NCBI GenBank assembly: GCA_964036045.1
Contig: OZ038378.1
Span: 173,290,001 to 173,354,000 of the forward strand
DNA from: Eutreptiella sp. 'Long Island Sound 2002'
Taxonomy: Eukaryota > Protista > Euglenida
DNA: 64,000 nucleotides
Direction of reading: 5' to 3'
The position numbers were made by a program, and so were the translations under genes. Positions within the stretch are counted from its first letter, which is position 1; the number at the start of each line of letters is the position of its first letter. Under the pieces are notes generated by a model that saw only the letters and a list, made by a program, of their open reading frames with translations, did not search any database and was not told the DNA's origin. This document shows, piece by piece, positions 10,496 through 57,391 of this stretch.

Positions 10496-13400
10496 ACACG
10501 GTCACACACGTTCAAACCCACAGAAGACCCCGATGCGGACCACACCCCCAAGGGGTGGACCTGGGGATTCCACACGGAACACAGAGCGGATCCGGAGCCA
10601 GGCAGTGACGACGCTCCACTACCATTCGCCCCACATCGCAGACGCATCGATAGGATCCACTTTGCCTCACACATGCTGCACTCCCTGACACGCTGCTACA
10701 CACACAGGCTGGGCGGCTCCGACCATCGGGCAGTCATAGCAACACTCTCCCCCCCACACTCCACAGACACCCAGCAACGGTTACGAGTCCCAGTGTCCTT
10801 CCTGAAGGACCCGGAGACGGTAAAAGAAATGGAGGCTGAACTCAAAGCTGTCGGACACCAGGGAGATGGCTGGTGGGAGGAGGCCACACAGATAATCAAA
10901 AAAACGGCGTTCAGGTTTGAAAAATCCATCCACACACAGGGCACACAGGAGGCATTGGCCATGTTGATGAGCGCAACACTGCGCCATACGCCAGCCGAGG
11001 CACTGCGCTTCCTGCGTGAAAAAGGACTCCACCCCGAGGACACACAACGTGCATACGCGATGCTGCAAGCGTTTGCAGAGAAAGAAAAGGCAGACAGGAA
11101 TGGGACCACAGTCCTGAGAAAGCTGCAGCAGGTACTCCAAGAGGAGCCGGCGACGGTATACCAGAAGCAACAACGTAAAATGGAAGTGGCACGGCTCACC
11201 AGGGAACTGCAGCAGCGGCGGCGACTGGCGGTGCTCAGGGACAAGGGAGGGTAGCTCCTCACCGGACCCACGGCAATTGCCAAAGCACTGCAAGAACACT
11301 GGTCGGGTATAATGGCGGCAGGCACAAAGACAGTGCCGGAATGCATCGAATATCTGAATTCCCTTCCCCTGGCACAGAATATCAAAAACGTGGCGCCAAT
11401 CCTCCTCCGCCCCCTCACTCAGGAACTGGTTCTCACGGCGCTTGAGAACCTGAAACGGGGTTCGTCACCAGGGGTGGATGGAATCCCAGCGGAAATTTTT
11501 CAGGCGCTGCCGGATGTGTTTGTACCCAAGATGTTTCAGTCCATCTCTGATTTTCTACAAAGGGGGTCAATCCCGCATGACTGGTCCCTTGGCATCCTGT
11601 CCCCCATCCCCAAAGAACAAGGATCAGTGTCGATCAATTGTCTGCGACCCATATGCCTGCAATACGTCCTGCTGAAATGGCTATCGGCGTCACTGTACTT
11701 AATGCTAGAGGACGTAGTGGCATTTGTTACGCCATCAGAACAGAAAGCTTTTATTAAAGGCCGGTTCATCTTCGATCATATATGGAATGCACGGGGCGCC
11801 TGGCAAGCAATGCAAGAGGGCGTCATGATCCCTATAGACTTCTCCAAAGTGTATGACTCCATCCAACACAATTACATGGTTGCATTTTTCCTGCATATCG
11901 CCCTCCCCATCCCCCTCATTGCGCTCCTGATGGCACTGTTTAAGGCACCCTTCCTGTTTGGAGTAGCGCGAGGAGTCGTCAAGGACGTGCTTGTCCATCC
12001 GCAGTCAGGAGTCAAGCAGGGCGACCCACTGTCGCCGGCAATTTTTGTTATGGTCAGCTCAATCCTCGTCCGGAAACTACAGAGCCTGTCACCCTGCATT
12101 CATATACTCTTCTATGCGGATGATCTGTTGATCTACATACCGCTGCCACCCCCCACCGTCTGCAAATTACTGACACACATATTCGAAGCCATACGAGTGT
12201 ACGGACTGTTTGTGGGCCTGCGGATCAACCTAGGGAAATCAGCATTCTTACTCAAAGGGGAGTGGGGGGAGGACCACAAACGCATCCTAGCCTCCTTTGG
12301 GGTGCCTGTTAAAGCCAAAATCAGGTACCTGGGTATAGTCCTGGGACACATGTCCAGTGAGGAGGCATATGCGCCAACCATAGCCAGGGCCATGCAGAGA
12401 GCAGAATTCATGCGCACGCTTCCCCTCACACACCAAGAACGAGTAGCATTGTTCCAGGAGTGGGTCCTGCCACTACTCATTTTTCCAGCCAGGGCGTATT
12501 TCCCGACAGACGCGGTGATATCCCAGGTGTCAGCAGTGTACAAGACGGCCCTATGCCTCACCTCTTGGGGACTGACGCTCCCAATTTTGGAACTCCGACC
12601 GGGACTGGGGGGTGACACACTCCCCCGGCCATCCAAATTTTTACTATGGCAACACGCCACAGCCTTCATGCTTTCCAGGCAAGAATCAACAGTGGTGCCC
12701 CCCCTATCGAGGTCACACCTCCGGACGTGGGCCTCCACGTTTGGTGTCCCCCTGGAGGCCAGGTTTCTACCATGGCTCCAACTAGGACCAATCCCATGGA
12801 AAACGTACCCCTTCCTGGGAATGTCATGCAAGGCATTCTCACTGCTTCGCAAGCCAGCAAAGGTCCCGACCCCCCCACATACACAGATAGACGCCATGCC
12901 GCTGTGGCATTCAGTGTTGTTCAAGGACACGCGCATGAACACATACTACTGCCCGGCCCTCATTAGAAAAGGCATACACACAATAGCACAGCTCAGAGAC
13001 ATGGACATTGCGGCACACCTCCCCAGGACATGGATCCCAGTGTACCAAAGTAGCCTGGCCAGCCTGGCACAACCCAGCGCGCCTCTAGCCAAAGAGGACG
13101 AAGGGCAACCAGCATTCTGGCTACAATGGAACAAACGGATCATGCTTCGTTTCCTAATGCAACTGTCCCCAGAGACCCCGAGACAGACGCCGGACACATG
13201 GCGTGCGTGGGCCAGGCTCTCCCTACCCCCGAACGATCTGGTTTTCATTCAGACAGCACTCTGGAAAAAACTCACAGTAGGATGCCGGCTGGCCAACTGG
13301 CAACCGGCAGACACCGCGTGCCCCCTGGACAGAGCACAGGAAACAATGGATCACACACTCACGGAATGCAGATTCCTGCCCACGGCATTCCATCTGGCAG

Positions 13401-14917
13401 TGCAGTGCATCGGTCCTATCCCCCATGAAGAGGGGACGGTCGTGGATCCCGCGGAAGTGCTGATCAACGCCCCGGTGCTGTCTGTGACAACGCCACTGGG
13501 GCTGGTCTACTGGTCGGCAATCAGAGCATCTTGGGCAGTCCAGTGTAAGCATAAGTTCCTGCAGTTAGCCTCACCTCCCTCCTGGTCCCATTTCCTGCGT
13601 ACATGGATTAAGGTCCTGTCGGAATGGGAACAACACCCGTGCCCCTCCCTCCCTAAGAACGAGATCACCCTACTGCTTCATGCACTCCAAACCATGGACG
13701 CCACAACGGTGCTGGAACACCCCAGGGTACGAGTGGCGTCGGACAGACCGCTGCCCACACTCCACCAACCAGCCCGCAAAAAAAAGAAAAAGTTCGCACA
13801 GGCGGCAGAGTTGGCAGCACACCATGAGTCCGTTATCCGCAGTCACGTGGAGGATGGATGGTCCATTGTATACCCTGACGGGTCATCCGAGAAACATCCG
13901 GAAGTGGGGAGAGTGGGGGGTTACGGTGTGTACTTCGGAGACCACAGAGATGTGGCGGAATTTTTGCCCGTGAAGGAGCCTCAAACCAACATCCGAGGGG
14001 AACTCCGAGCAGCACTCAGTGCGTTGCAGGGGCACATCCCAGGAACCAAGTCCCTGATCTGCCCCGACTGTCAGCTTGTGGTAGATGGAGTGCTTGGCCT
14101 GGCGCAAAGGTGGCGGCGGCATAACTGGCGAAATACCTCAGGGGACGTGGCCCATGCGGACCTGTGGGCACAGATCCTGGAACTCACAGAGCGCCATGGC
14201 ACAGAAATCAAGTGGATGCACGTCCCATCACACATAGGAATCCGGGGTAATGAAAAAGCGGACCAACTGGCAGACCTGGGCAGGAGAAAATCACCATTGC
14301 TTTTTGGGAGAATATCAGTGACCCCCAGACAAGACGATGAGGAAGAGGAGCGGGAGCTGTTGGATGGGGAGATATCGGTATGGGGCGATGAGGAAGAACC
14401 CCCCCCCCCCCCCGGAGGAGGAGAACCCCCCCACCCCCTGCCGGATGCCACGAACACCGCAGGCCACACCACAGCGGCCGGTTGGAGTTCTTAGTCCGGA
14501 AGTCATTGCCTCGCCACTATGGGATGTGGAAGTGTGCACACCAGCCATGATACGCAAGTGCCGCAGATTTGACACGCCACAACCACACAGCCAAATCAAG
14601 TACACGCCACAGCAGGTACAACTACCGCGGCAGTCACAGCCGACGCCCATGTCAGGGGTGCATCACACACCCCGGGTAATTGGACCCAACAGGTGCACGT
14701 TCCAGACGCCAGAACCGCCGTCGCCGCTCACCCCCAGTGCCAGGACCAACCTGCTGAGGTCACTGAACCTGGTGGAGATGGAGGGGGGGGGGGGACACCC
14801 CCCGAAAGGGCACTGTCGGACAGTTGGATGACGGACAACTCTGATACAGAATCGGTGGCAGACACCGACTCCACAATGTCCTGTAGCACAGCGTGCTCCA
14901 TGTGTTTCACTCCTTAA
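10496..14917 (+). pseudogene. LINE ORF2 (APE endonuclease C-term - RT - zf-RVT-like - RNase H - S/T/P-rich tail), disrupted
   Basis: EN: WTW...RRIDRI...SDHRAV. In-frame TAG at 11252-54. RT: SPGVDG, LRPICL, IDFSKVYDS, GVKQGDPLSP, YADD, YLGI. ALWKKL...CPLD...DHTLTEC. RNase H at about 13859-14285: YPDGS, TNIRGEL, DCQLV, HVPSHIG..GNEKADQLA. Apparent frameshifts at C15 (14399-14413) and G12 (14783-14794) would extend the ORF to TAA at 14917. Confidence 0.9.
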
Positions 14918-16060: not shown

Positions 16061-17406
16061 GTCCCGATCCTGCAGTCCATCGCCGTGGCAGAGCGCGCGC
16101 TCACCTCCCCGTCAGCGACGCTGGACGGCGCCGGCACCACCCCGCACTTCATGTACGTGTCCCCGACGAAGGCCCTGGCCCAGGACCAGCTGCGCGCCTT
16201 CCGGGACTTCGTGCCGCAGAAGTGGCAGCACCTTTTCCAGACCTACGACGGGGACGTGCCGCATAGCGAGCGGTCGCACGTGCGCGACGCCGCGGCCGTC
16301 ATGCTGACGAACCCGGACATGCTGCACTGCAACATGCTGCCGCAACACCGGCAGTGGGCTGCGTGGTTCGCCTCCCTGCGGTACGTCGTGCTGGACGAGG
16401 CGCACATGTACAAGGGGGTCTTCGGGGCCCACGTCGCGATGGTGCTGCGGCGGCTGCAGCGGGTGTGCGCGTTCCACAAGGGGCTGGCGAAGGGGGCGTG
16501 CCCGGTCCAGTTCGTGATGTGCACCGCCACGCTGGGGGACCCCCTGCGGCACTTCCACAGCCTGACGTCCCTGACCGCCTCCCTCATCGACAAGGACGCC
16601 AGCCCCTCGGGGACTAAGTACGTGGTGCTGTGGAACCCGCCGCCGGAGTCCCAGTACCAGCCCGTCCCCAAGAAGGCGGGTGCAGAGCACTGCAAGACGG
16701 AGGGCGTGGCGGCGGTGGCGCGGGAGGGAGCGGACGGGCACGCCCGTGAGCCCGGCGACCCCGTCGCTGGTGCAGCTGCGGGTTTGGGTGGGGTAAGTGG
16801 GGGCGTCAGTGGGAGCGGGGGCGGTGCGGGTGTCGAGGCAGGGCCGGGGAGTGTGGGAGGGGCCCCTGTCAAGACCGAGGCCGGGGGCAGCAAGAGCGCG
16901 CTGGTGCCCGCGGCGTACCGGAGGGCGGACGGGCAGCTGGCGTACGACATCCAGCGGACCAGTCCGTACCGGGAGGCCGCGCGGCTCACGGCCAACCTCA
17001 TGGTCAGCGGCCTCCGGACCATCGTGTTCGTGAAGGTCCGGCAGGTCGCGGAGCTGGTGCTGGGGTACCTCCACCGCCTGCTCAGAGAGAGCGGCAACCC
17101 CGACCTCATCCCCCTCGCGAAGGTCTACCGGGGGGGCTACCAGGCCGCGGAGCGCCGCAGTGTGGAGCGGGAGCTGTTCTCGGGGCAGCTCCTGGCCGCC
17201 GTGGCCACCAACGCCCTGGAACTGGGGGTGGACGTCGGGACCCTGGACGCCGTGGTGATGGTGGGGTATCCGGGCACGAAGGCCAGCCTCTGGCAGCAGA
17301 TGGGGCGTGCCGGGCGCGGCACGAGGCCCGGACTGGCGGTGCTGGTCGCGCTTCAGCAGCCGTTGGACCAGTACCTGCTGCGCAATCCGGAGATGCTGTT
17401 CGACAG
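16061..17406 (+). CDS. HRQ1: HRQ1-like helicase, exon 4 (motifs Ia-VI)
   Basis: CAG|GTC acceptor; YVSPTKALAQDQ, LTNPDMLH, VVLDEAHMYKGVFG, CTAT, ATNALELGVDVG, QQMGRAGR; phase-2 donor ACAG|GTTC at 17407. Confidence 0.95.
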
Positions 17407-17412
17407 GTTCTT

Positions 17413-17500
17413 CCCCTGCCCCTGCCCCTGCCCCTGCCCCTGCCCCTGCCTCTGCCCCTGTTATCTGCCCCTCCCCTTGCCCCTGCACCTGCACTGCCCC
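17413..17500 (+). repeat. (CCCCTG)n hexamer microsatellite at the start of HRQ1 intron 4
   Basis: Tandem CCCCTG directly after the donor; it explains the spurious PCPCPC tail of the ORF track. Confidence 0.85.
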
Positions 17501-17937
17501 GTCCGTCACCAGCGGCCGTCGGTGGGGCGTCAACCGCTGTCGGCCCAACATCGACGGTGGGGCTCACAAGTGTTTTTCATGTGAAAGGAAAAAAAACAAC
17601 CGATCAGGACCGCCGCTGACGCAGAGGCGTGAATGGGCACTGGGGGCTGGTGGTGGGCCGACGTTGGGTGCTGGTGAAATGATGGGCGGAGCCGGTTCGC
17701 AAATGGTCGGTCAATGGTCAACCGATGGCAGTTGGCGGTTCTACGACAGCCGTTGGGTCACTGGGGGCTGGCAGTGTTGTCGGGGGCTGGAAGCAGCCAG
17801 AGTTCTGCCGTCGTCTTGATCGGCATCGGTGTCATTGAGGGTCGCCCAGACATGCCCGCCCCTCCCCTCACCCGTACCCCCGGTGATTACCTCCGCATCT
17901 GCCTCGCCCCTCCCCCGCGCATCTGCGCCTGGAACAG

Positions 17938-47600: not shown

Positions 47601-50138
47601 GCGCAGGAGAGGGGGAAGTGGGGGCTGCCAAAGAGAATTGCATTGTGACCAGCCCATCTGCCCCCTTGGCGTCCTTCGTCAACGCCAGCCGACGTGCTTG
47701 CACATGGGGGGGCTTTCAAGGCTGTGGCACATCAGCCGGCCCAGACTCGGCCAATGGTGCTGGGGGTGTGCGTGAACGATAAAAGACGAGAGGTCTTGTT
47801 CTGGCGCCTGCTCCCCGACGCGGGGGACGGGGGTAGAGGGGAGCGCAGCGCAGGAGGTTTGCGCGAAGGAGGTGGCGAGGGCGCAGGAGTGGGAATGGAG
47901 GCGTAAGAGGCTGGGGGGCGAAGGATGTTGGACAGGGCAGCCAAGTCTGGGTCTTGGGGGTTCAAGCCCGGCGGCACATGGAGCGATGGGGCAATGGAGC
48001 GTTGCGATGGCGCTTGGGGCTGCTTCATGCAATGCGGGTCGCCTTGCTCGCCACTACGCTTCCGTACTACGCACTGCACATTCCGCCCCAGTTTTGTTCC
48101 TCTTCCTGCAGCCCTGTATGAACCATCGGTTACTCAGGCACTCGGGAAAAGATTTTCGGACTCTGCATCAGCAGCGTTGCCCTCAACATCCTCCGTGGGA
48201 CGGTTTTGCACTGCGTGGGCACAGCGTGCACACTTGTTACCCATTTCATACCCATTGCATATGCGGTGCTATTCGTTGCAGGAACCCACGTTGTATACCC
48301 GTGAAAAGCACGACCTCCCGAGAGAAAAAAAGAAGCACTAACACACAATTCATCATTGCCATTATCAGGCACTCATCCGCTCATCACTCATAATACTGGT
48401 TTACGCGCGGAGTAGAGTGAAACTTGAAATAGGGTCCCATCTCTCTGGTGGTATAAAAATTTTGCACTGCGTGCAAAGGCGTCCACTGTACATGGCAGAT
48501 CCATTGCTACAGAATACCTGCAGCCAAGAGGTTGTGGACAATTCTGGACCGTGATGCAACGGATTGCAGCAAAGCGCTGCCACGCCGAAGCACTGCACAG
48601 GCGCCCAAGTGAAATGTACGCCCCTTCCACGTTACACAGAACTGGTCACTTCTGCGCCCAGTGCGGACGTTCACACTATTCATGTGCGCCCTGTCTCTGG
48701 GTCAGTATCGCAGGGTGTGCTTGGTCACAACATACAACAAACAAAGGCATACAACACATGCGACGCTAACATGGACTTCCTGAATACTGGAGCCATCTTA
48801 CTACATCGGACACCACGGCACCGAAACATTGAAGTCAAGTTCACAAAGCTTTAGATATAATCACATCATCGTCATGTCACGGAGCAGTCTGTGTGTCGAA
48901 CTGCAGCCACTTACAGCGCCTCAGCAAATCAGCACATTATTGATTCTTTGCAGGCCAATTCCAAGGGGCAAGGGCGAAAGCATCGACCCAAAAGAGAGGA
49001 AGAGAGGAAGGGGGAGACATCGAAGTTCTCAGGCACCAACACAGCCAAAGGGAAAGGGGTGTGCGGTCTGAGCAGCAGGAGAAAGGGCCACATATTGGTC
49101 AGGGATAATGCTAAGCACTTGGCCCGAAAGGGCGCTGTCAGACGACCTTCATGACGCTGGTCTGAGAGATGGAACCCCTGCTGAGACCACTGCTGAGAAC
49201 CACAAAGAGTTCGGAACATGTGCTTCGAGTTCGACGAGCCCAGTCTGCCAACACCCGCCTCATGTGCCCCATGTCGCCCTCCGGTTCGATGCTGGGGCTT
49301 CTGCCTGTTGTATTTGGTGTCGCGCCCCGGCAGTAGGATGGCTGGCAGCGTGCTGTGTCAAAGAAGTCGGTTGATCCCGTGGCGTCACGATCCCCGACCG
49401 TGACGTCGCCATCCGCAAGGCACCAGCATCCGTGCGTGACCGTGCGGATGAAATGTGCCAGGGCTCCCACTGACCGTTCTGAAGAGCAGATTGGGTTAGC
49501 GTCAACACATCCGATGTTGAGACATGCAAAAGTCAGAGCAGCGGCGGTGGGGCGGGTGTGCATGCCCTCAACGGCTGCAGTAGTACGGGCAGCAACACCT
49601 CTGAGGACCTGACTCGCGAAGAGATGCCCCTTCAGTGCGCAGTGGCAGTGGAAATGGGGTAGGGACACCGGGAAGGGACCCGGCACCGTATTTGTCGCTG
49701 TTGTACATCCCGCAGACTGCGCTGCGGCCAAAGAGTGGTCGATGGTGAGTATGCTCCTCAGAAAATCTCACCGCGTCTGTGTGCTCGGCACTGACGAACC
49801 GGCGACGATCCTGGGCTTTGGAAGTGGCCCGCTCAGAGACGCCCCAGGCTCCCCTTGCAGCTCCAAAAACGCGCTGGCATGACAAAACGCAGCACAAGCA
49901 CGACAAGCATCGATCACATCAACGGACGACCGCTTTTGTCGCTGTTGCCCACAAATCCCGCAATCAACAACTTGTCGATGGCCATGTGGCAAACTACCAC
50001 CAAAAGGTCAAGTCGTTTGTGATGCCACATGATTGCGTTCAATTCCAACGCGAACGACCTACTCGACTGGCACGGCCTCTTTGACGGGTACGTCCGCATC
50101 GTGGCGCTTCATGGGGCTTTGGGGGTGCTGGACACTCC

Positions 50139-52038
50139 TCAGTGCGCCTCGAAAAGGCTGTTCCCGAGGAACTCCTGCACCAGAGCCCCGCCCGGCACCG
50201 ATCGCCTGCTGAGCCCATAGAAGTGCCCCACAAAGTCCAGAAGCCGCGCCGCGTGCGCGAACTCGGCGTGGCCGGGGCGCACGCAGCGCAGCAGCGACTC
50301 CGTCTCCATCCGCAGCGCCATGATCTCGTAGTCCGCGGCGGAGTTGACGAAGGCGTCGGCGCCGTCGAGGAACGGCGCCAGGCTGCCTTGGCCCGCGGCG
50401 GCGCTGCAGCGCCCAAGGGACGTGGCCGCGTCGACGCCCGCGCCGTTGAAGTCGCGCAGGACGCGGCGCATGGCGAGCAGGGCGTCCGGCGGCAGCAGCG
50501 TGAGTTCGTCGAGGCAGATGCGGGTCACGGGCGCCACGCAGACCCTGAAACACTGCGTGGCCCCCACGGCGCCGAGGACGGAGGGGTGCAGCCCCAGGGC
50601 CCCGTGCACCAGCAGCAGCCCTCGGTCCGGGAGGGTGAGCCGCGGGGGGGCCAAGGGGGAGCCGGGCGGCGCGACCTCCTTCCCGGACAGCAGGTGTCGC
50701 ACGTGCTTGCCGAACTGCTGCAGGTCAAAGGCGTCGGCGGCCTCGGGCGTGTCCGCGGGGCAGTAGACGTCGGTGCAGAGCAGCGTCGAGGGGATGCCGG
50801 CCGCCATCAGCTGCGACTTCAGCTGCGCGGCAAACGTCAGCGTGCCGGCGCACGGCGGGCCCCCGATGCAGGCCGCACGGAGGCCCGCCCCCCGTTGCGC
50901 GATGGCGTCCACGACCTCCATCAGCTTCTTCATGTGCAGCGCCTCGCTGAGCTGCACCACCTGCAGCACCTCCCCCGCCTGAATGCTGGCGTTCAGGTCC
51001 CCGGCGCACCGGATGCCCACGGCCGCGCTCTGCTGCGCCATGTCGGCGGCCAGCGTGTGGAGGATCGGAGGGACCGTGAACTGGTTTCGGGTGATGCCCG
51101 TCGGCGTGATGCCGGTGCACGGCGGAGTGCACAGGAGCATGTGCCCGTTGTGCGGCTGCAGGTCAAAGAAGCGGGTGTACCCCGTGGACGGGGCCAGGGG
51201 CACCAGATGCAGCTTCATGACGTCCTGGCACTTGTTCACCTGCACGAACGGCAGGTTGCGCGCCTTCAGCAACGAGGCGGACTCGCTGTCGCCCCCGCGC
51301 TCGAAGTACTCCAGGACGTCGGCGGTGGGCAGCGACATGACGTGAATGGGGACGTCCTCCTGAATCAGTTTCGTGAGGGCGTCTTTGATCTGCTGCACCG
51401 GAGGACGGCCCTCGAGATCCGGAAACCCACAGACGTACGCCGCGGGCTCCTGCGGGGCCTCGGACCCCGCCGCATGCCACACCCGCACCGCGCGCGTGGG
51501 GTACAGCCGCTTGCAGGCCATGCTCAGCAGGAAGCGAAGCGTGGCGCGGTACACGGCGATGCCCTCGGCTGACTCCACATGGACGGGCTGCACGTCCGAA
51601 GTCAGACCGGGAAGAGGGCTGCGGAGGCTCATGATTTGGCCGCCGACTGCACTGGCGATGATATCCTTCGCGGGCAGGAACTCGGCCATGGTCTGCACCT
51701 CAGGGAAATTGCTGGCCATTTGGTAGGGCAGCGGGCGGGATCCCGGGTCCGGGGGGGGCGCTACGGCGTGCCGCCGGGCGGTGACCTCGAATTCGCTGCC
51801 TCCTACGAATTCCCGCAGGATTGCTGTGGGTGGGATCCATTTATCGCTGAGGGGCTGCACGGCCGTGAGGAACGACATCAGCTCCTGCGCGGTCTGGAAC
51901 ATGGGATCATCGGGACTTACTGTCTCCAGCAGCGGCATGCAATGGACCTTGAGCACGGCGAGTTCGTAGGTGGAACTGGAGTTGAAGCTGTAATCCACGC
52001 CCTCCAAGTTGGGCAGGATATTCAGTTCCTCCCCCCGC
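50139..52038 (-). CDS. Tandem ThrRS-N/uridine-kinase-like protein, exon 2 (end of module 1 and the whole degenerate module 2)
   Basis: TGCAG|GCGG phase-2 acceptor restores WDSVRRGEELNILP..DYSFNSSSTYEL and IPPTAILREFVGGS. Module 2 has VYRATLRFLLSMA, PLAPSTGY, GDLN, P-loop GPPCAGTLT, YEI and EFLGNSLF. Confidence 0.9.
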
Positions 52039-52963
52039 CTGCAGGAGAACATGCATGGCTAGAAGCACCCCGACGGTGGTTTGGAACAGCCATGCCTGCA
52101 CCGATGGGGGTTTTGCACGCACCTTTCGCGCACCATGAATGTCTTGGGGTTTGTGGTAGGGCCCTTGGGCCAGCGTTGCGGGAATGCGACAAGGTGGGTG
52201 GCAGGTTGAGTGGCATGTGGGGTGGTATGTTGGGTGGCATGTGAGGTAGTTGATGTTGGGGATACCTTCATACCTCTTGCATGTACATTACAATGCACAA
52301 AAAGGAAATGCCTGTCCCGAGGAGTGATGCTTGGTCTTATTGACGAATGGATTCGCTGTTCAATATTGCTGTTCACTCCATCGATCCGTTTCCTGGGCCA
52401 AAACAGGACTTTCAGTGCAAAAATGGAAATTTTGTTAGAAAAAGGCCATTTGTGAGAGCGGCGCAAATGTGCAAATGTGTTGGGGGCACAAAGCAGTGCG
52501 CAAGGAGGGCTTGGACACCAATCCCCATCGGTGCTGTGTGCAAGTGGTGCAAAAATAGCACAGTCTTATAGCACAGTCTGACAGCACCCCTGCACCCCCA
52601 CATCTGTCAGGGGTGGGGGCAAATATTCTGTTGGGGTTGACAATTTGCACATGGCTGATTAACAATGCTGTCAGACAGTCCTTCCCCCCCCCAATTCCCC
52701 CCTTCTTGTCAAGTAACAGAGGTAATGACGCATTGGGAAACCTCGTTTTTGGGCGGGGGCTGCACAGTTTTTGTGGGGGATTTGCAAATGTCAGCGGCCA
52801 TTGTGTCCATCACCTTTGACCTTGTGTCCCAACCCCCAACCGCCATCAACCGCCTCCTGCCCCCGTCAAGCGCATGCCTGGCGTAGGGACCGTATTACTT
52901 TGGTGCTTTGCCGTACCCGCGACGAGGCGTGGGTGCCAGGCCACGGCTTACTGTTACCGAGGG

Positions 52964-53078
52964 CCTCAATAGGTCAGGTGTGGACCCGCCACTTAGCTCC
53001 AGCCGCGCCTGCCTCACGACCTTCATTGCCAACTCAGTTCCATGATTGTGCGTGTCACTCGGACAGTGCAATGCAGTT
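52964..53078 (-). mobile_element. 115-bp extreme 5'-truncated copy of the intron-3 LINE family
   Basis: Ungapped alignment to 15863-15977 (11 mismatches in 115), same 3' end, perfect 13-bp TSD CTGTTACCGAGGG at 52951-63 and 53079-91. Confidence 0.9.
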
Positions 53079-53451
53079 CTGTTACCGAGGGGGGGTGGGT
53101 GGCAGCCTGGGCTCCTCCACCTGACCCACCTACCTACTCCCCACCCACATCAGAAAAATTTTCCTCAGGAACAAAATGCAATTTATCAAAGGGGCCCAAA
53201 ATTGGAGGTCAATTGTAGGTGCACAAACTTTTTTTTTCCGCCTGTGAACCCCCCCCACCCCCACCCCCCGGCCTTGGTCACGGTCACCACTAAGCCGTGG
53301 CCCGGTGGGTGCGTCGGTCTCATTCCCGGCCAAAAAAAATCAACCGGGTTCACAAAAAGGGGCCGCAACACAACGCATGACGACACGGGGCAGGGCCAAG
53401 GGCATCGCAGGGAATCGATCGGACGTCGCAGGGGCAATGGCACTAGGGCAC

Positions 53452-55010
53452 CTGACGGAGTCCCACTTCCCGAGGGTCGATGACGCCGAGCGGCCGCGAT
53501 GCAGGAAGTCACGGGAGATCCGGCGCAGAAGGCGCAGCGTGCGATGCGAGAGCCACTCGAGATCGTCGAAGCGGACCTGCGAGATCGGGGCGATGAAAAT
53601 GCGGAACTTGTGCTCCGGCGCGATGCGCTGCGTCAGATCGGGATTGAGGCAGAAGATGCCCTCCATCACCAGCACGCCCCCGCGGGGGAGCCGCATCATG
53701 CGGCCTTTGGCCTTGGGCTTCTGCGCCACCATATCGAAGATGGGGGTCTCGACCTCTTCACCGGCGGCCAGCTTTAAGAGATGGTCGTTTAGGTCGTGCA
53801 ACCGCAGGGCCTCGGGGACTTCGTGGTCCGGGGCACCGGAGGACGTGCGCGGGTAGTCCGGCTCGTCGGGACAGCGGTAGTAGTCGTCGGTACTGAGAGG
53901 CAGCGCCGCCACCCCCGCGACTTGGAGCGCAAGCGACAGCTTCGCCGCGAACGTGGTCTTGCCCGAGGCCGAGGGCCCGGCAATAAGGACCAGTCGGACG
54001 CCGGTGCGCGCGGCGATGCTGCGGGCGACGGCGGCGATGCGGCCGTCCGTCTTGGCCTCGTCCTGTGCCACGAGGCCGGCCCCATGGCCCCCGACAATGG
54101 CGGCGTTGAGGTCCCCGATGCACGTGACGGCGCACGCGGCGCCCCACGCCTGCGCGCGGTCGTGAACCTCCCGGAGGCTGGGCAGGTCCGTGAAGGGCGA
54201 ACACCGGGAGGGGTGGCTGGGGTTCGGGAACCGCACCACAAACCCGTCCCCCACGTGCTGCAGGGCGAAGGTGGTGAGCCGCCCGGTCGAGGGCACCAGC
54301 GGCCAATGCCAGAGCCTCACGTAGTCCCGGCATCGCTGGCACGCCACGGTCCCGCGCCGCGCCGCCTGCGCGGAGTAACCTGCGAACTGCCCGAGGGCGT
54401 GGCAGAGCGGCGCGGGGGCGCTGCGCAGCGGCAGCCACACCTCTTCGATGTGCAGGTCCTCTTTGACCAGGCGGTTCATGGCCCGCGTCAGCGCCAGCAC
54501 GTCGTCGTCCGTCGCGGCCACGCCTTTGAACGTGCAGTACTCGCCGTTGGACAGCGACGTCTCCTCCAGGGCAAACGCGTGCTCGACGCACAGAGCGCGG
54601 TCCGGGAAGACCTCCTGACAGGCCATGGCCAACAGGAACCGGATGGAGCGGTGGTAGACCTTCAGTCCGTCGGGGTGCGCCAGTGTCAGCGGCTCCACAC
54701 GGGCCGTGTCGGGCGGCAGCTGCTGCTGGAGACTGACCACGCAACCACCGGAAAGTGCAGCTACGACGTCCCGTGTTGAGCCCAGGGGAAGCAAATCCGC
54801 TGCAGCCCTGAAGCCCTCGGCATTCCGCATGTCGCTGCCTGAGGCGGGGGACTCCCCGAGAAGCTGTCCCATGGCCTCGTACATCACCCGAAGCGGGTTC
54901 TCGTATTTGCGATTGAGGGCTGCGCTGAGCACCAGATCGATCTTGTGGGGGATGTCATTCTTATGCAGGTACTGCACATCAGCATCGTCTGCGTAGGGTT
55001 CACTGGCCAT
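53452..55010 (-). CDS. Tandem ThrRS-N/uridine-kinase-like protein, exon 1 (Dpy-30/RIIa-like motif and intact module 1)
   Basis: ATG 55010 after pyrimidine-AG (55025-24); YLHKNDIPHKIDLVLSAALNRKYENPLRVMYE; VYHRSIRFLLAMA; PLVPSTG; GDLN; LIAGPSASGKTTF; STDDYY; EGIFCLNP; RLLRRISRD..HRG; donor TCAG|GTGCCC. The spliced CDS is 3459 nt. Confidence 0.92.
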
Positions 55011-57391
55011 TGGAGCACAAGAACTGCCGTCAAAAAATGGACAATGGACAGGTGACCGCCAAGCACATGCTTCGCACACACTCCCGCCAAGCACATCTGG
55101 TACCCACTCCCGCCAGGAAGTCCCAGCACTTCTTGTCAATGGCCCTTACACAGCGGCTGGCAGGCGCAGCATGGAGGGGGCCAGTCCAGCAGCATGGTGG
55201 CTGCGGTGCCACGCTGTGGCTGGTAGTGTAGCAGCATGGTGGCTTGCATGGCGTGGCATGGCATGCTGTGTCTTCATGCGGCCAAGAATGGTAAACTTCG
55301 CGCTGTCGCATTGACAGCCTGATCCGATTTGGGTCTGTGGGTGTAGTGTGGCAGTTTGCTATTCTACACTTCATAGGCTCTTCTCGGAACCTCACCCCTT
55401 TGGTAAGGCTTGTGCACTGTGTGACATTCCCAAACCCCTGACCATCGTTTTCTCTTCCCTCTATCCCCCTACTGGCCCTATCACTGACACCTGTACTATG
55501 CACATCAGAGTCAGGAAATTTGGGTCCATTACAGCCAGATTCGCTGAAATCACATCAAAACAAACAGAAATGGGGTCCCGCCTCAAGCACAATTTTACAC
55601 TATCAGAAACAACTCTTCATCGGCACAGCACAGCCCCTCTTTCCTGTGGCTCAAACCGTACTGCAGCTTGCGAAACCAACCGGAAATATCTGCCATTGGG
55701 GTCATCAAAACATTTGTGGAACAGGCATTGCGTATTGCCTTGCGTAGGTAGCTCAATCACACAGCACTCGCTGCCCAGTAGAATATAGAGGGCAAGATGG
55801 CCCCCAATATTGCAGGTATTTTTCAATTGCCACATCTGGTTCCAATTTTCAAGGCTATTTGTGCTAGCAATACTGTGTGGTAATCCGTCCTGCTGAGTTG
55901 AAAAAGGTTCCAAAAAGGTAGGTTTTCTAAACAGGGGTTGTTGCCGTTGAATAGGTCATAAATTTTGCTACCCATATTGGGGTCACTTACCGCTTTGACG
56001 TTTGCAACAATTTGATTTTTCTTGGCAAGTTGTCCACCACAGCTTGAGGCCAACCAAAAAAAAGAGATGTGATTTTCGGGCATGTACCTGGTAGATTTCC
56101 AACAATTGTTTCCCCCAAGAGTTGCCCCGACAATTACAACTAAAATGCCTCAGTGAAGCGAAGGCAGGAACTTTTATGACGTGGTTCCAAACCTTTCAGC
56201 CGGTTCAGCGGGCCACTGGGGATGCTCATGCAAGTGTTTTTTTTGCCTGTTTTTAGCCCGTGGTGACCTGTCTTGAGCCTCTAAAGTCTCAAAAAGTGTG
56301 GAAACCAACGGGTCAGAAGGGCAGTGCAGACAAGATACTAACAAGGCAACAAAAAATATGACGATGGGAAATTTTTTCGTCAAAAATGGTCAGGTGAGTT
56401 ATATCTGAGCCTTCCACTCCCTTGGCCAAAGAATGTGGTGGAAGCTGTGGTGGGGTGTTGGTGCCAAAACTGAGCAACACTGGGCTATTCTTAGGATTTT
56501 GAGACTATTTTTTGAAAATGATGTCACTTGGTAAGGCGACCGAATTGTTGACAACTTTGAAGGCCCCTTCCTGTACCGGTACTCATTGTCTCAGATGTGC
56601 CCCAAACCTTTTTTTTTTTTGGATACCGTTCGTGTCCCACCAAGATTTTTGAAGAAAATCTGCACCAAAAACCATGCCCAGACAAACTGATTTGTTGCAA
56701 AGCAGCTATTGCTATCCTGTTCGTGCATCCCATTTTTGCTTTCTGATGCATTCTGAGCCACCTCAGCCCTTGTGGTGTAGTGTTGGTTGAAAATTGCACA
56801 CCCCCCCCCCCCCGGGAAAAAAACTGATTTTTCTGGGACCCCATGCAGGTTCATGGAGTGTAGGCACAAACTTTTCAGCAAAAGCAATGATAGCAAGGGA
56901 TGAAACCATGTAGCCTTGTGTGTATGACTGCATCCTTGCATCCTCAAATGTAGCCTTGTATGTAAGGTGCAAGGATACAGCTGTGTAGAGCCGGCGAAAC
57001 TTTGGGGTTGCTCTAAAGTTCAATCTCAGCACATGGAGTGTTGGTCATTTGCCAAACACTCAATGGCGTGCACACCCCCCCCCCCCCTGTTGTGTGCTTG
57101 TTGCACCTGCCCACAGGCCCCTTTTGTGTGCTGTGGACCAGCTGTATGGTGAGATCCATTGTACTCACTCAGGGCGTCCTGACCTCCTCCTCTCCACCAC
57201 CTCCTGCCTGTTGTCTGTGTCTTGTTGAGCTCCCTGTATCACTGGCATTTAAAGAACCACATCAACATCCGACATAATGAAGCTTTTTTGTCACTCGGGT
57301 TGTGGCGCTGTGTATCCCTTTTCGTTGTTGGCTACTACTCACAAATTGAAACACATCACTATCCTATATGATGAAAGATTGGCTGTATGTA

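Follow-up and report, generated by a model that had tools for sequence, protein, structure and literature searches.

The present study concerns a protein-coding gene in a 64-kb stretch of DNA from Eutreptiella sp. 'Long Island Sound 2002' (GCA_964036045.1, contig OZ038378.1, positions 173,290,001-173,354,000; hereafter, the window), which was compared with the 2.28 Gb of genome sequence searched. The gene lies on the minus strand at positions 50139-55010 of the window and consists of two exons of 1559 and 1900 nt, which together give 1152 codons and a TGA stop. This is exactly the location and length proposed in a previous reading of the letters alone, hereafter the sequence-only reading. The predicted product begins with a putative dimerization-docking (D/D) domain, followed by two copies of a module in which a domain resembling the N-terminal part of threonyl-tRNA synthetase (ThrRS-N) is joined to a uridine-kinase-like domain; the first copy appears to be catalytically intact and the second to be degenerate. 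All searches and structural models were run on exon A and exon B as separate sequences. The elements of the gene are as follows.

53452..55010, minus strand: exon A, 1559 nt, residues 1-519 and two bases of codon 520; 67.6% guanine plus cytosine (GC)
50139..52038, minus strand: exon B, 1900 nt, last base of codon 520, residues 521-1152 and the stop
52039..53451, minus strand: GT-AG intron, 1413 nt, phase 2, 55.1% GC, the joint being present in one contig of RNA run X1
53452/53451, minus strand: splice donor GTCAG/GTGCCC, from the sequence
52039/52038, minus strand: splice acceptor CTCCTGCAG/GCGG, from the sequence
55010, minus strand: start ATG, from the sequence
50141-50139, minus strand: stop TGA, from the sequence
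53451-53921 and 54523-55024, minus strand: stretches at exon A covered by mapped RNA-library contigs
50581-50766 and 51554-52039, minus strand: stretches at exon B covered by mapped RNA-library contigs
55011..55023, minus strand: 13-nt 5' untranslated region, bounded by the inferred acceptor and the first ATG (55010)
55024..55025, minus strand: AG acceptor, a probable spliced-leader (SL) trans-splice site, from a contig of run X3 and a polypyrimidine...CAG context
55028..55043, minus strand: SL-like candidate relic TGTCCATTTTTTGACG, identical at 13 of 16 positions to the 3' part of the euglenid SL
52961..53080, strand not assigned: 120-nt dispersed repeat within the intron, with an RNA-library depth of 10-130 and many different flanks

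Gene structure and expression

Two long open frames are present on the minus strand of the region (55139-53340 and 52052-50139), and the GC content of the window sequence differs between the exons (approximately 68%) and the intron (55%). The splice joint restores the sequence W.SVRRGEE.NI.P, which is conserved in the family, and exon B encodes the C-terminal 85 residues of kinase domain 1 in one open frame with module 2. A frame of 476 codons also runs antisense to exon B (50142-51572, plus strand); it is an expected by-product of coding DNA with 68% GC and not a gene.

Parts of the locus were present in four estuarine metatranscriptome runs, contigs of which were mapped onto positions 49800-55750. 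These contigs matched both exons with 99-100% identity and left the intron empty, except for the dispersed repeat at 52961-53080. One contig links 52037 to 53451, the omitted 1413 nt having CT..AC ends; only 20 nt of this contig lie on its short side, and it is regarded as supporting rather than strong evidence. Instead of the two separate transcripts that the sequence-only reading had named as a possible outcome, one RNA contig joins the two exons, and the locus is one expressed two-exon euglenid gene. The 120-nt element in the intron has at least 1550 first-look candidate copies in the genome, and all 40 of the 40 that were scored were 97-100% identical; the identity of these copies and the RNA depth with many flanks suggest a young dispersed short repeat.

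Regarding the 5' end, one contig (run X3, record 24) matches the genome from 54877 to 55024 and then shows 7 unlike letters, precisely at the acceptor TTTTTTGACGGCAG. The euglenid SL ends in G, which explains why the match runs one base into the AG. A euglenid SL query sequence found approximately 7480 copies in the genome against 0 of a control pattern, and no dinoflagellate spliced leader was found by a search of the genome. Because the contig diverges at the acceptor and the genome is rich in the euglenid SL, we infer that 55025-55024 is a trans-splice acceptor, in which case the mature mRNA would start at 55023. The SL-like relic is placed 2 nt before the acceptor AG and 4 nt before the predicted start of the mature mRNA; it overlaps the polypyrimidine tract and is, thus, suggestive only. 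No other match with 3 or fewer mismatches is present in the 64-kb window, for which 0.22 would be expected by chance, and the relic may be a chance match. Together with the presence of a single intron, where the paralogue described below has 20 exon pieces or more, it hints that the gene may have originated as a retrogene.

The docking domain and the two kinase modules

The predicted domains of the product are listed below.

54858..54977, minus strand: putative D/D domain of the RIIa/Dpy-30 clan, residues 12-51, from profile links and an AlphaFold2 (AF2) model
54030..54839, minus strand: module 1 ThrRS-N-like domain (TGS-like and N2 editing-domain-like), from the family profile
53454..54008, minus strand: module 1 uridine-kinase-like domain, exon A part, from PF00485, TIGR00235 and 3w8r
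51783..52038, minus strand: C-terminal 85 residues of kinase domain 1 (RGEE..FNS..YELAVLK..REFVGGSEF), aligned to the C-terminus of single-module relatives
50913..51740, minus strand: module 2 ThrRS-N-like domain, from its row in the family alignment and AF2 fold matches
50142..50885, minus strand: module 2 predicted pseudokinase domain, from motif losses in a fold that appears to be kept

The two halves of the protein, previously suggested to be copies of one module, aligned over 483 residues with 30% identity and an E-value of 1e-51, a likeness far beyond chance. Module 1 was matched by PF00485 (PRK/uridine kinase) at E 2.9e-13 (50.5 bits against a cut-off of 22) and by the TIGR00235 udk model at E 2.9e-19, with a score of 69.5 that is well below the equivalog cut-off of 220; the uridine kinase of Thermus thermophilus in the PDB (3w8r) matched exon A at E 1.6e-6. 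Exon B on its own had no match in Pfam or NCBIfam and aligned with bacterial 'nucleoside kinases' at E-values down to 1e-61. Module 2 is tied to the PF00485 family via module 1, its relatives and its fold only. A family profile that included both window modules among its rows matched ThrRS structures (6vu9, 1nyq, 1tje and 1qf6) at E 1e-35 to 7e-30 and also mL39 at E 5e-12, and these matches, along with those of PF00485 and udk, uphold the ThrRS-N/uridine kinase nature assigned to the modules from sequence. Pfam TGS was reached weakly by only 6 of the 24 family members, and the first TGS strand looks reduced by eye in both window modules. In the alignment of the family profile with ThrRS, the family consensus had no histidines at the positions of 'RHS.AH', which we take to be the HxxxH of the ThrRS editing site. 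With two modules and a tag in 1152 aa, the protein departs from the single module of approximately 550 aa that is a feature of the family.

All of the motifs quoted for the two copies in the sequence-only reading are present, and the motif table and profiles bear out the three-part layout that it described, namely, a docking motif, an intact module and a degenerate module. The two modules compare as follows.

P-loop: intact GPSASGKTT in module 1 (53952..53978, minus strand); degenerate GPPCAGTLT in module 2, Lys to Thr and Thr to Leu (50835..50861, minus strand)
Catalytic Asp block: TDDYY in module 1; TDVY in module 2
Ribose-binding block: PDHE in module 1; deleted in module 2
FD motif: PIFD in module 1; PGSP in module 2
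EG motif: EGIF (EGIFCLN) in module 1; HGAL (HGALGLH) in module 2
Lid: RRISRDFLHRGRS in module 1; RRVLRDFNGAGVD in module 2

The Walker A pattern GxxxxGK[ST] is found in module 1 and not in module 2, and the catalytic Asp, ribose-binding block and lid arginines of module 1 align to those of the T. thermophilus enzyme. Module 2 has lost the Lys and Thr of the P-loop, the Glu of the EG motif, the Arg pair of the lid (RGR to AGV) and the ribose-binding block, and it keeps TD.Y and RR..RD. Its AF2 model, built from 51 aligned sequences, had a mean predicted local distance difference test score (pLDDT) of 89 and a predicted template modelling score (pTM) of 0.89. In Foldseek, this model matched the ThrRS N-terminus (6vu9, E 1.1e-8; also 1tje and mL39) as well as human uridine-cytidine kinase 2 (UCK2) and the T. 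thermophilus uridine kinase at approximately 1e-4. A retained fold with lost catalytic residues is what defines a pseudoenzyme, and both are indicated for module 2; 'active kinase plus pseudokinase' is, therefore, a fair description at the level of sequence. The claim of a dead second module stands for the window gene and fails for its kinetoplastid-like relatives, which keep GK[ST], EG and RRxxRD in both modules.

An N-terminal segment of approximately 35 residues had been suggested to follow the Dpy-30/RIIa pattern, and profile links, AF2 helices and the top Foldseek row agree with this suggestion. Residues 1-60 alone gave one marginal match in the PDB, to the N-terminus of Chlamydomonas enolase (7n6g, 7sqc; E 0.12), and the best E-value of a single-sequence genome search with the tag was approximately 3. 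More was gained from P0242 (UniRef100_A0A7S1J0Z7), a relative of double length, the N-terminal motif of which is 38% identical to that of the window protein over the aligned segments. A two-sequence profile of these N-termini matched the Chlamydomonas enolase N-terminus (7n6g_6G) at E 1.7e-4 and found at least seven further copies of the motif in the genome (E 1e-5 to 0.05), and in hhalign it matched these seven with 98.6% probability. When these seven were compared with Pfam, one (L019) passed the RIIa cut-off (22.7 vs 22.4) and four matched Dpy-30 at 0.002-0.05. The resulting nine-sequence profile matched enolase (1.6e-7), the D/D domain of the protein kinase A (PKA) subunit RI-alpha (2ezw, 1.5e-5) and AK8 (0.005) in the PDB, followed by weak rows that are non-significant alone (FAP385, 0.013; DPY30, 0.034-0.2; NME5, 0.13; AK7, 0.37). 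The AF2 model of the tag (pLDDT 80) shows helices at residues 9-17, 20-33 and 39-51, i.e., a short helix and then a helix-loop-helix, in keeping with the helix pair anticipated for this segment. The best Foldseek row was the RI-alpha D/D domain (5hvz_B; template modelling scores 0.68/0.76, root-mean-square deviation 1.4), followed by the enolase chain and DPY-30, with E-values that are non-significant for a model of 53 residues. Based on these profiles and the model, we conclude that residues 12-51 belong to the RIIa/Dpy-30 clan as a divergent member, the RI-alpha/enolase type being the nearest.

The same tag opens the reading frames of unrelated proteins of the genome, including a protein with eight Cupin_2 repeats, a GST-like protein and a coiled-coil protein, the last of which had no Pfam match and was judged by eye from heptad-like repeats. 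The loci of the tag found by the profile search of the genome are as follows.

L014: contig C12, 25622502
L021: contig C26, 3999415
L018: contig C24, 31963408
L015, L017, L019 and L020: four further copies

Paralogue, relatives and the age of the duplication

A search of the genome with exon A and P0242 revealed exon-sized matches on another contig, C5.

C5:56252955-56329862, minus strand: paralogue, loci L029-L037, at least 20 pieces over approximately 77 kb

Its gene model consists only of local tblastn pieces over 90 kb. The series opens with the D/D motif SEEDVAFLNRFAIPSKVDALVSAVLHRKME. In module 1, the position where a P-loop would be expected reads ..KGGALIPCRPYARRC.. and lacks one, EG is replaced by HG, and RRI.RD by RRIVKGY; module 2 has GPAASGKTA, STDNYY, PLFD and LILEG. 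Judging from these motifs, the C5 gene appears to be a mirror image of the window gene, with a dead module 1 and a module 2 in which the P-loop is intact. The C5 exons resemble P0242 (40-54%) more than they resemble the window gene; P0242 is encoded by neither of the two genes, which is not encoded at high identity in the genome.

Outside this genome, word searches found only single-module proteins of approximately 550-590 residues, which were mostly bacterial (Spirochaetota, Anaerolineae, Bacteroidales and Bacillota), with two from EukProt, and the protein atlas contained bacterial single-module clusters only. An exhaustive search with exon B gave 1720 matches, mostly bacterial proteins of approximately 550 residues, and among them six double-length representatives. 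A word search with an alignment of double proteins returned only P0242 and one 720-aa protein and adds nothing on distribution. The double-length proteins are listed below.

P0241: 1105 aa, from a metagenome contig
P0242 (UniRef100_A0A7S1J0Z7): 1295 aa, from an MMETSP transcriptome labelled Eutreptiella gymnastica
P0243 (longer cluster member P0389), P0245, P0246 and P0343: 1121-1181 aa, kinetoplastid-like

The contig of P0389 carries closely spaced, intronless genes on the same strand, including a homologue of TFIIH Ssl1, which is the kinetoplastid pattern. The sequence-only reading had not recognised the architecture of the window protein; the same layout is present in UniRef A0A7S1J0Z7 and in the second gene of this genome, and untagged doubles occur in the kinetoplastid-like contigs.

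In a maximum-likelihood tree of 61 modules, including 38 bacterial rows, the first modules of the window protein, P0242, P0389, P0245, P0246 and P0343 formed one group and the second modules of the same six proteins formed another, each with a support of 93 in the Shimodaira-Hasegawa-like approximate likelihood ratio test. The approximately unbiased (AU) test rejected a duplication within the window lineage itself (p-AU 0.035). The proposal that the protein was remodelled privately in this alga is not compatible with these groupings, which extend across six lineages; the tree indicates an old duplication that is common to several lineages. The long branches of the second modules (2.02 for window module 2 and 0.68 for module 1) call for caution with the tree.

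All eukaryotic or eukaryote-like rows, i.e., the double proteins, the single-module proteins P0002 (EukProt) and P0260, and those of Archamoebae (Pelomyxa, Rhizomastix and Mastigamoeba), fell on one side of a branch with 100% support, opposite the 38 bacterial rows. The term 'laterally acquired' in the sequence-only reading is not borne out by this split: a recent lateral transfer is not supported by the tree, and because all eukaryotic rows fall together, any transfer would be an old one and not peculiar to this alga.

In the case of P0241, its own two modules were sisters (support 96), and its duplication is, therefore, a separate one. Module 1 of P0241 carries GPSCSGETT (Lys to Glu). Since this duplication is independent and its first module lacks the Lys, pseudokinase halves have arisen on more than one occasion in the family. 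Taken together, the sequences suggest that the family was doubled early in Euglenozoa, tagged in euglenids, and then converted into kinase-pseudokinase chains, the polarity of which is opposite in the two paralogues.

Proposed function and comparison with known systems

We consider, with modest confidence, that the product is a tagged live/dead double kinase that is probably bound to a cytoskeletal or flagellar scaffold, with the dead half serving as a partner or allosteric surface. The D/D domain would make a parallel homodimer, the groove of which would hold an amphipathic helix of a scaffold protein, and two chains would then bring four kinase-like modules, two live and two dead, into one tethered complex. 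Such an assembly may be likened to human UCK2, which is reportedly a homotetramer. The dead module would act as a fixed partner or an allosteric regulator of the live module, and the scaffold would most likely be cytoskeletal or flagellar. Our best guess for the address of the protein, by analogy, is the flagellum or cytoskeleton because related tags hold AK8, AK7 and NME5 in axonemes and a homologous one is found on the enolase of the central apparatus. This enolase is a C1b subunit that is located beside adenylate and guanylate kinase domains (PMC9113940). The design of one catalytic module and one partner fits both paralogues because each has one canonical module per chain, with reversed polarity. 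The substrate is probably a nucleoside, which is not secure because the only bacterial member of the family to have been assayed made no uridine monophosphate (UMP).

Several points weigh against this interpretation. The N-terminus of the window protein alone found no RIIa or Dpy-30 match in Pfam even at E-values up to 10, and its membership in the clan was reached via profile links, with the non-significant Foldseek values given above. The splice joint was seen in one contig only, with a short side of 20 nt. The enolase-type extension, the function of which is unknown, also occurs in Arabidopsis, which has no flagellum (PMC4192683), so that carrying the tag does not prove a flagellar address. 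Furthermore, TmUK, the family member of Thermotoga maritima, formed no UMP in either its full-length or truncated form, and showed only ATPase activity, in the presence of uridine (PMC10248530).

An alternative that deserves serious consideration, even if we regard it as unlikely on balance, is that the N-terminal domain only dimerizes the enzyme, which would then be a soluble cytosolic salvage kinase without a scaffold. D/D domains are primarily dimerization modules, the tag is found on many unrelated soluble enzymes of this genome, and the homologous enolase extension in a non-flagellate plant points in the same direction. On the other hand, the solved relatives that were found (PKA RI-alpha, DPY30, AK8, FAP385 and the enolase of the central apparatus) all use the domain in a larger assembly, and one tag on many enzymes looks more like a shared address than independent dimerization.

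We give the same limited weight to the possibility that the protein is not a nucleoside kinase at all: the ThrRS-N-like domain would bind the end of an RNA or tRNA, or some other ligand, and the P-loop domain would be an ATPase or a kinase for something other than free uridine, as has been proposed for the protein of T. maritima and Treponema pallidum. The hydrolysis of ATP by TmUK in the presence of uridine without the formation of UMP supports this possibility, and the authors of that study mention that a role in translation control had been proposed earlier (PMC10248530). The fold shared by ThrRS-N and mL39 is RNA-associated, and the fold matches include the N-domain of Schizosaccharomyces pombe Tad2, a UCK-like domain of a tRNA deaminase subunit. 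However, the motifs shared with uridine kinase in the alignment (DDYY, DHE and the lid Arg) are retained in module 1, the editing histidines of ThrRS are absent, and one negative assay at 37 C on an enzyme from a hyperthermophile is weak evidence.

It appears quite unlikely that module 2 is a remnant in the course of decay, without an independent function. The loss of at least five catalytic or binding motifs and a branch longer than that of module 1 are what decay would leave. Against this, the module has a 547-codon open frame and its model is confident for both domains, the structural positions that hardly vary within the family are conserved in it, and the C5 paralogue and P0242 likewise keep a full-length degenerate module. 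The open frame alone is weak evidence because GC-rich DNA yields long chance frames, such as the 476-codon frame antisense to exon B.

A recent acquisition from bacteria with remodelling in this lineage alone is highly improbable: the family is overwhelmingly bacterial (1720 matches) and patchy in eukaryotes, but the 100% split, a duplication common with kinetoplastid-like sequences and the AU test against a private duplication all oppose it, and the window gene has a spliceosomal intron and host-like GC while its paralogue has at least 20 exon pieces. That two separate genes or transcripts were wrongly joined, as the single short contig might allow, is hardly credible because the intron splits kinase domain 1, which continues in frame in exon B, with GT-AG borders that give the exact conserved W.SVRRGEE.

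An extension of the tagged live/dead double kinase interpretation, which we offer as a long shot, is that euglenids keep two tagged double kinases in which the dead halves complement each other (live-dead in the window, dead-live on C5) and that would be co-assembled via the tag on one scaffold, perhaps flagellar, as a tethered nucleotide-handling unit; its substrate may not be free uridine. The activity of this kinase family is itself unsettled, and along with the reciprocal live/dead paralogues, this is the part most worth experiment. The window gene provides a tractable natural system in which to ask what a live P-loop kinase module gains from its dead twin. With this gene, an enzyme of the pyrimidine-salvage type joins the metabolic enzymes of this alga that bear a D/D tag, and this points to an address that they share.

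Elsewhere in the window, a 1060-codon open frame with reverse transcriptase and RNase H domains (11312-14494, plus strand) belongs to an element of the type without long terminal repeats, and a 499-codon frame (16085-17584, plus strand) contains DEAD and Helicase_C domains. An Rfam scan of the window gave no match.

All of the parts of the protein (the D/D tag, the ThrRS-N-like domain and the PRK-family kinase) are known, and their combination was not found in the literature searched, in which no tandem or D/D-tagged member of the ThrRS-N/kinase family is described; searches of the literature for a tandem or tagged uridine kinase of Euglenozoa gave nothing relevant, and a Lotmaria paper merely lists a 'uridine kinase' mRNA. 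Proteins of the same layout are already present in public databases and undescribed in the same literature.

Among the closest known systems is the bacterial three-domain family (TGS, ThrRS-N2-like and PRK kinase, approximately 550 aa), which includes TmUK and the protein of T. pallidum. Each window module is homologous to it over the full length, with 32-40% identity and E-values down to 1e-78, including the C-terminal extension FNS..YE..VLK..REFIGGS. The bacterial proteins have a single module, no D/D tag and all catalytic motifs intact, whereas the window protein carries a tag and a pair of modules of which one is dead. P0242 shares with the window protein the order of D/D motif, module 1 and module 2, and its modules group with those of the window in the tree; however, it is only 31-38% identical, its module 1 is altered (GAIDSGRKT, RHVHQN), and its module 2 keeps GSGKTS and EG. 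The kinetoplastid-like doubles (P0389/P0243, P0245, P0246 and P0343) share the tandem ThrRS-N/kinase modules, which derive from the same old duplication, but have no N-terminal D/D tag and keep GK[ST], EG and RRxxRD in both modules.

With respect to the tag, AK8, AK7, NME5 and the enolase of Chlamydomonas similarly combine a metabolic enzyme with an RIIa/Dpy-30-clan domain of approximately 40 residues. The window protein differs from these tagged axonemal enzymes in its catalytic domain, which is of the PRK/uridine-kinase family, and no D/D-tagged enzyme of that family was found in the literature searched. Regarding the dead module, the N-domain of S. pombe Tad2 (7eey) and Arabidopsis TTM1 (7z67) are UCK-like pseudokinase domains among the fold matches of module 2. 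The JH1-JH2 pair of JAK is a covalent kinase-pseudokinase tandem; it resembles the window protein in having a dead kinase copy beside a live one, and differs in being built on the unrelated protein-kinase fold.

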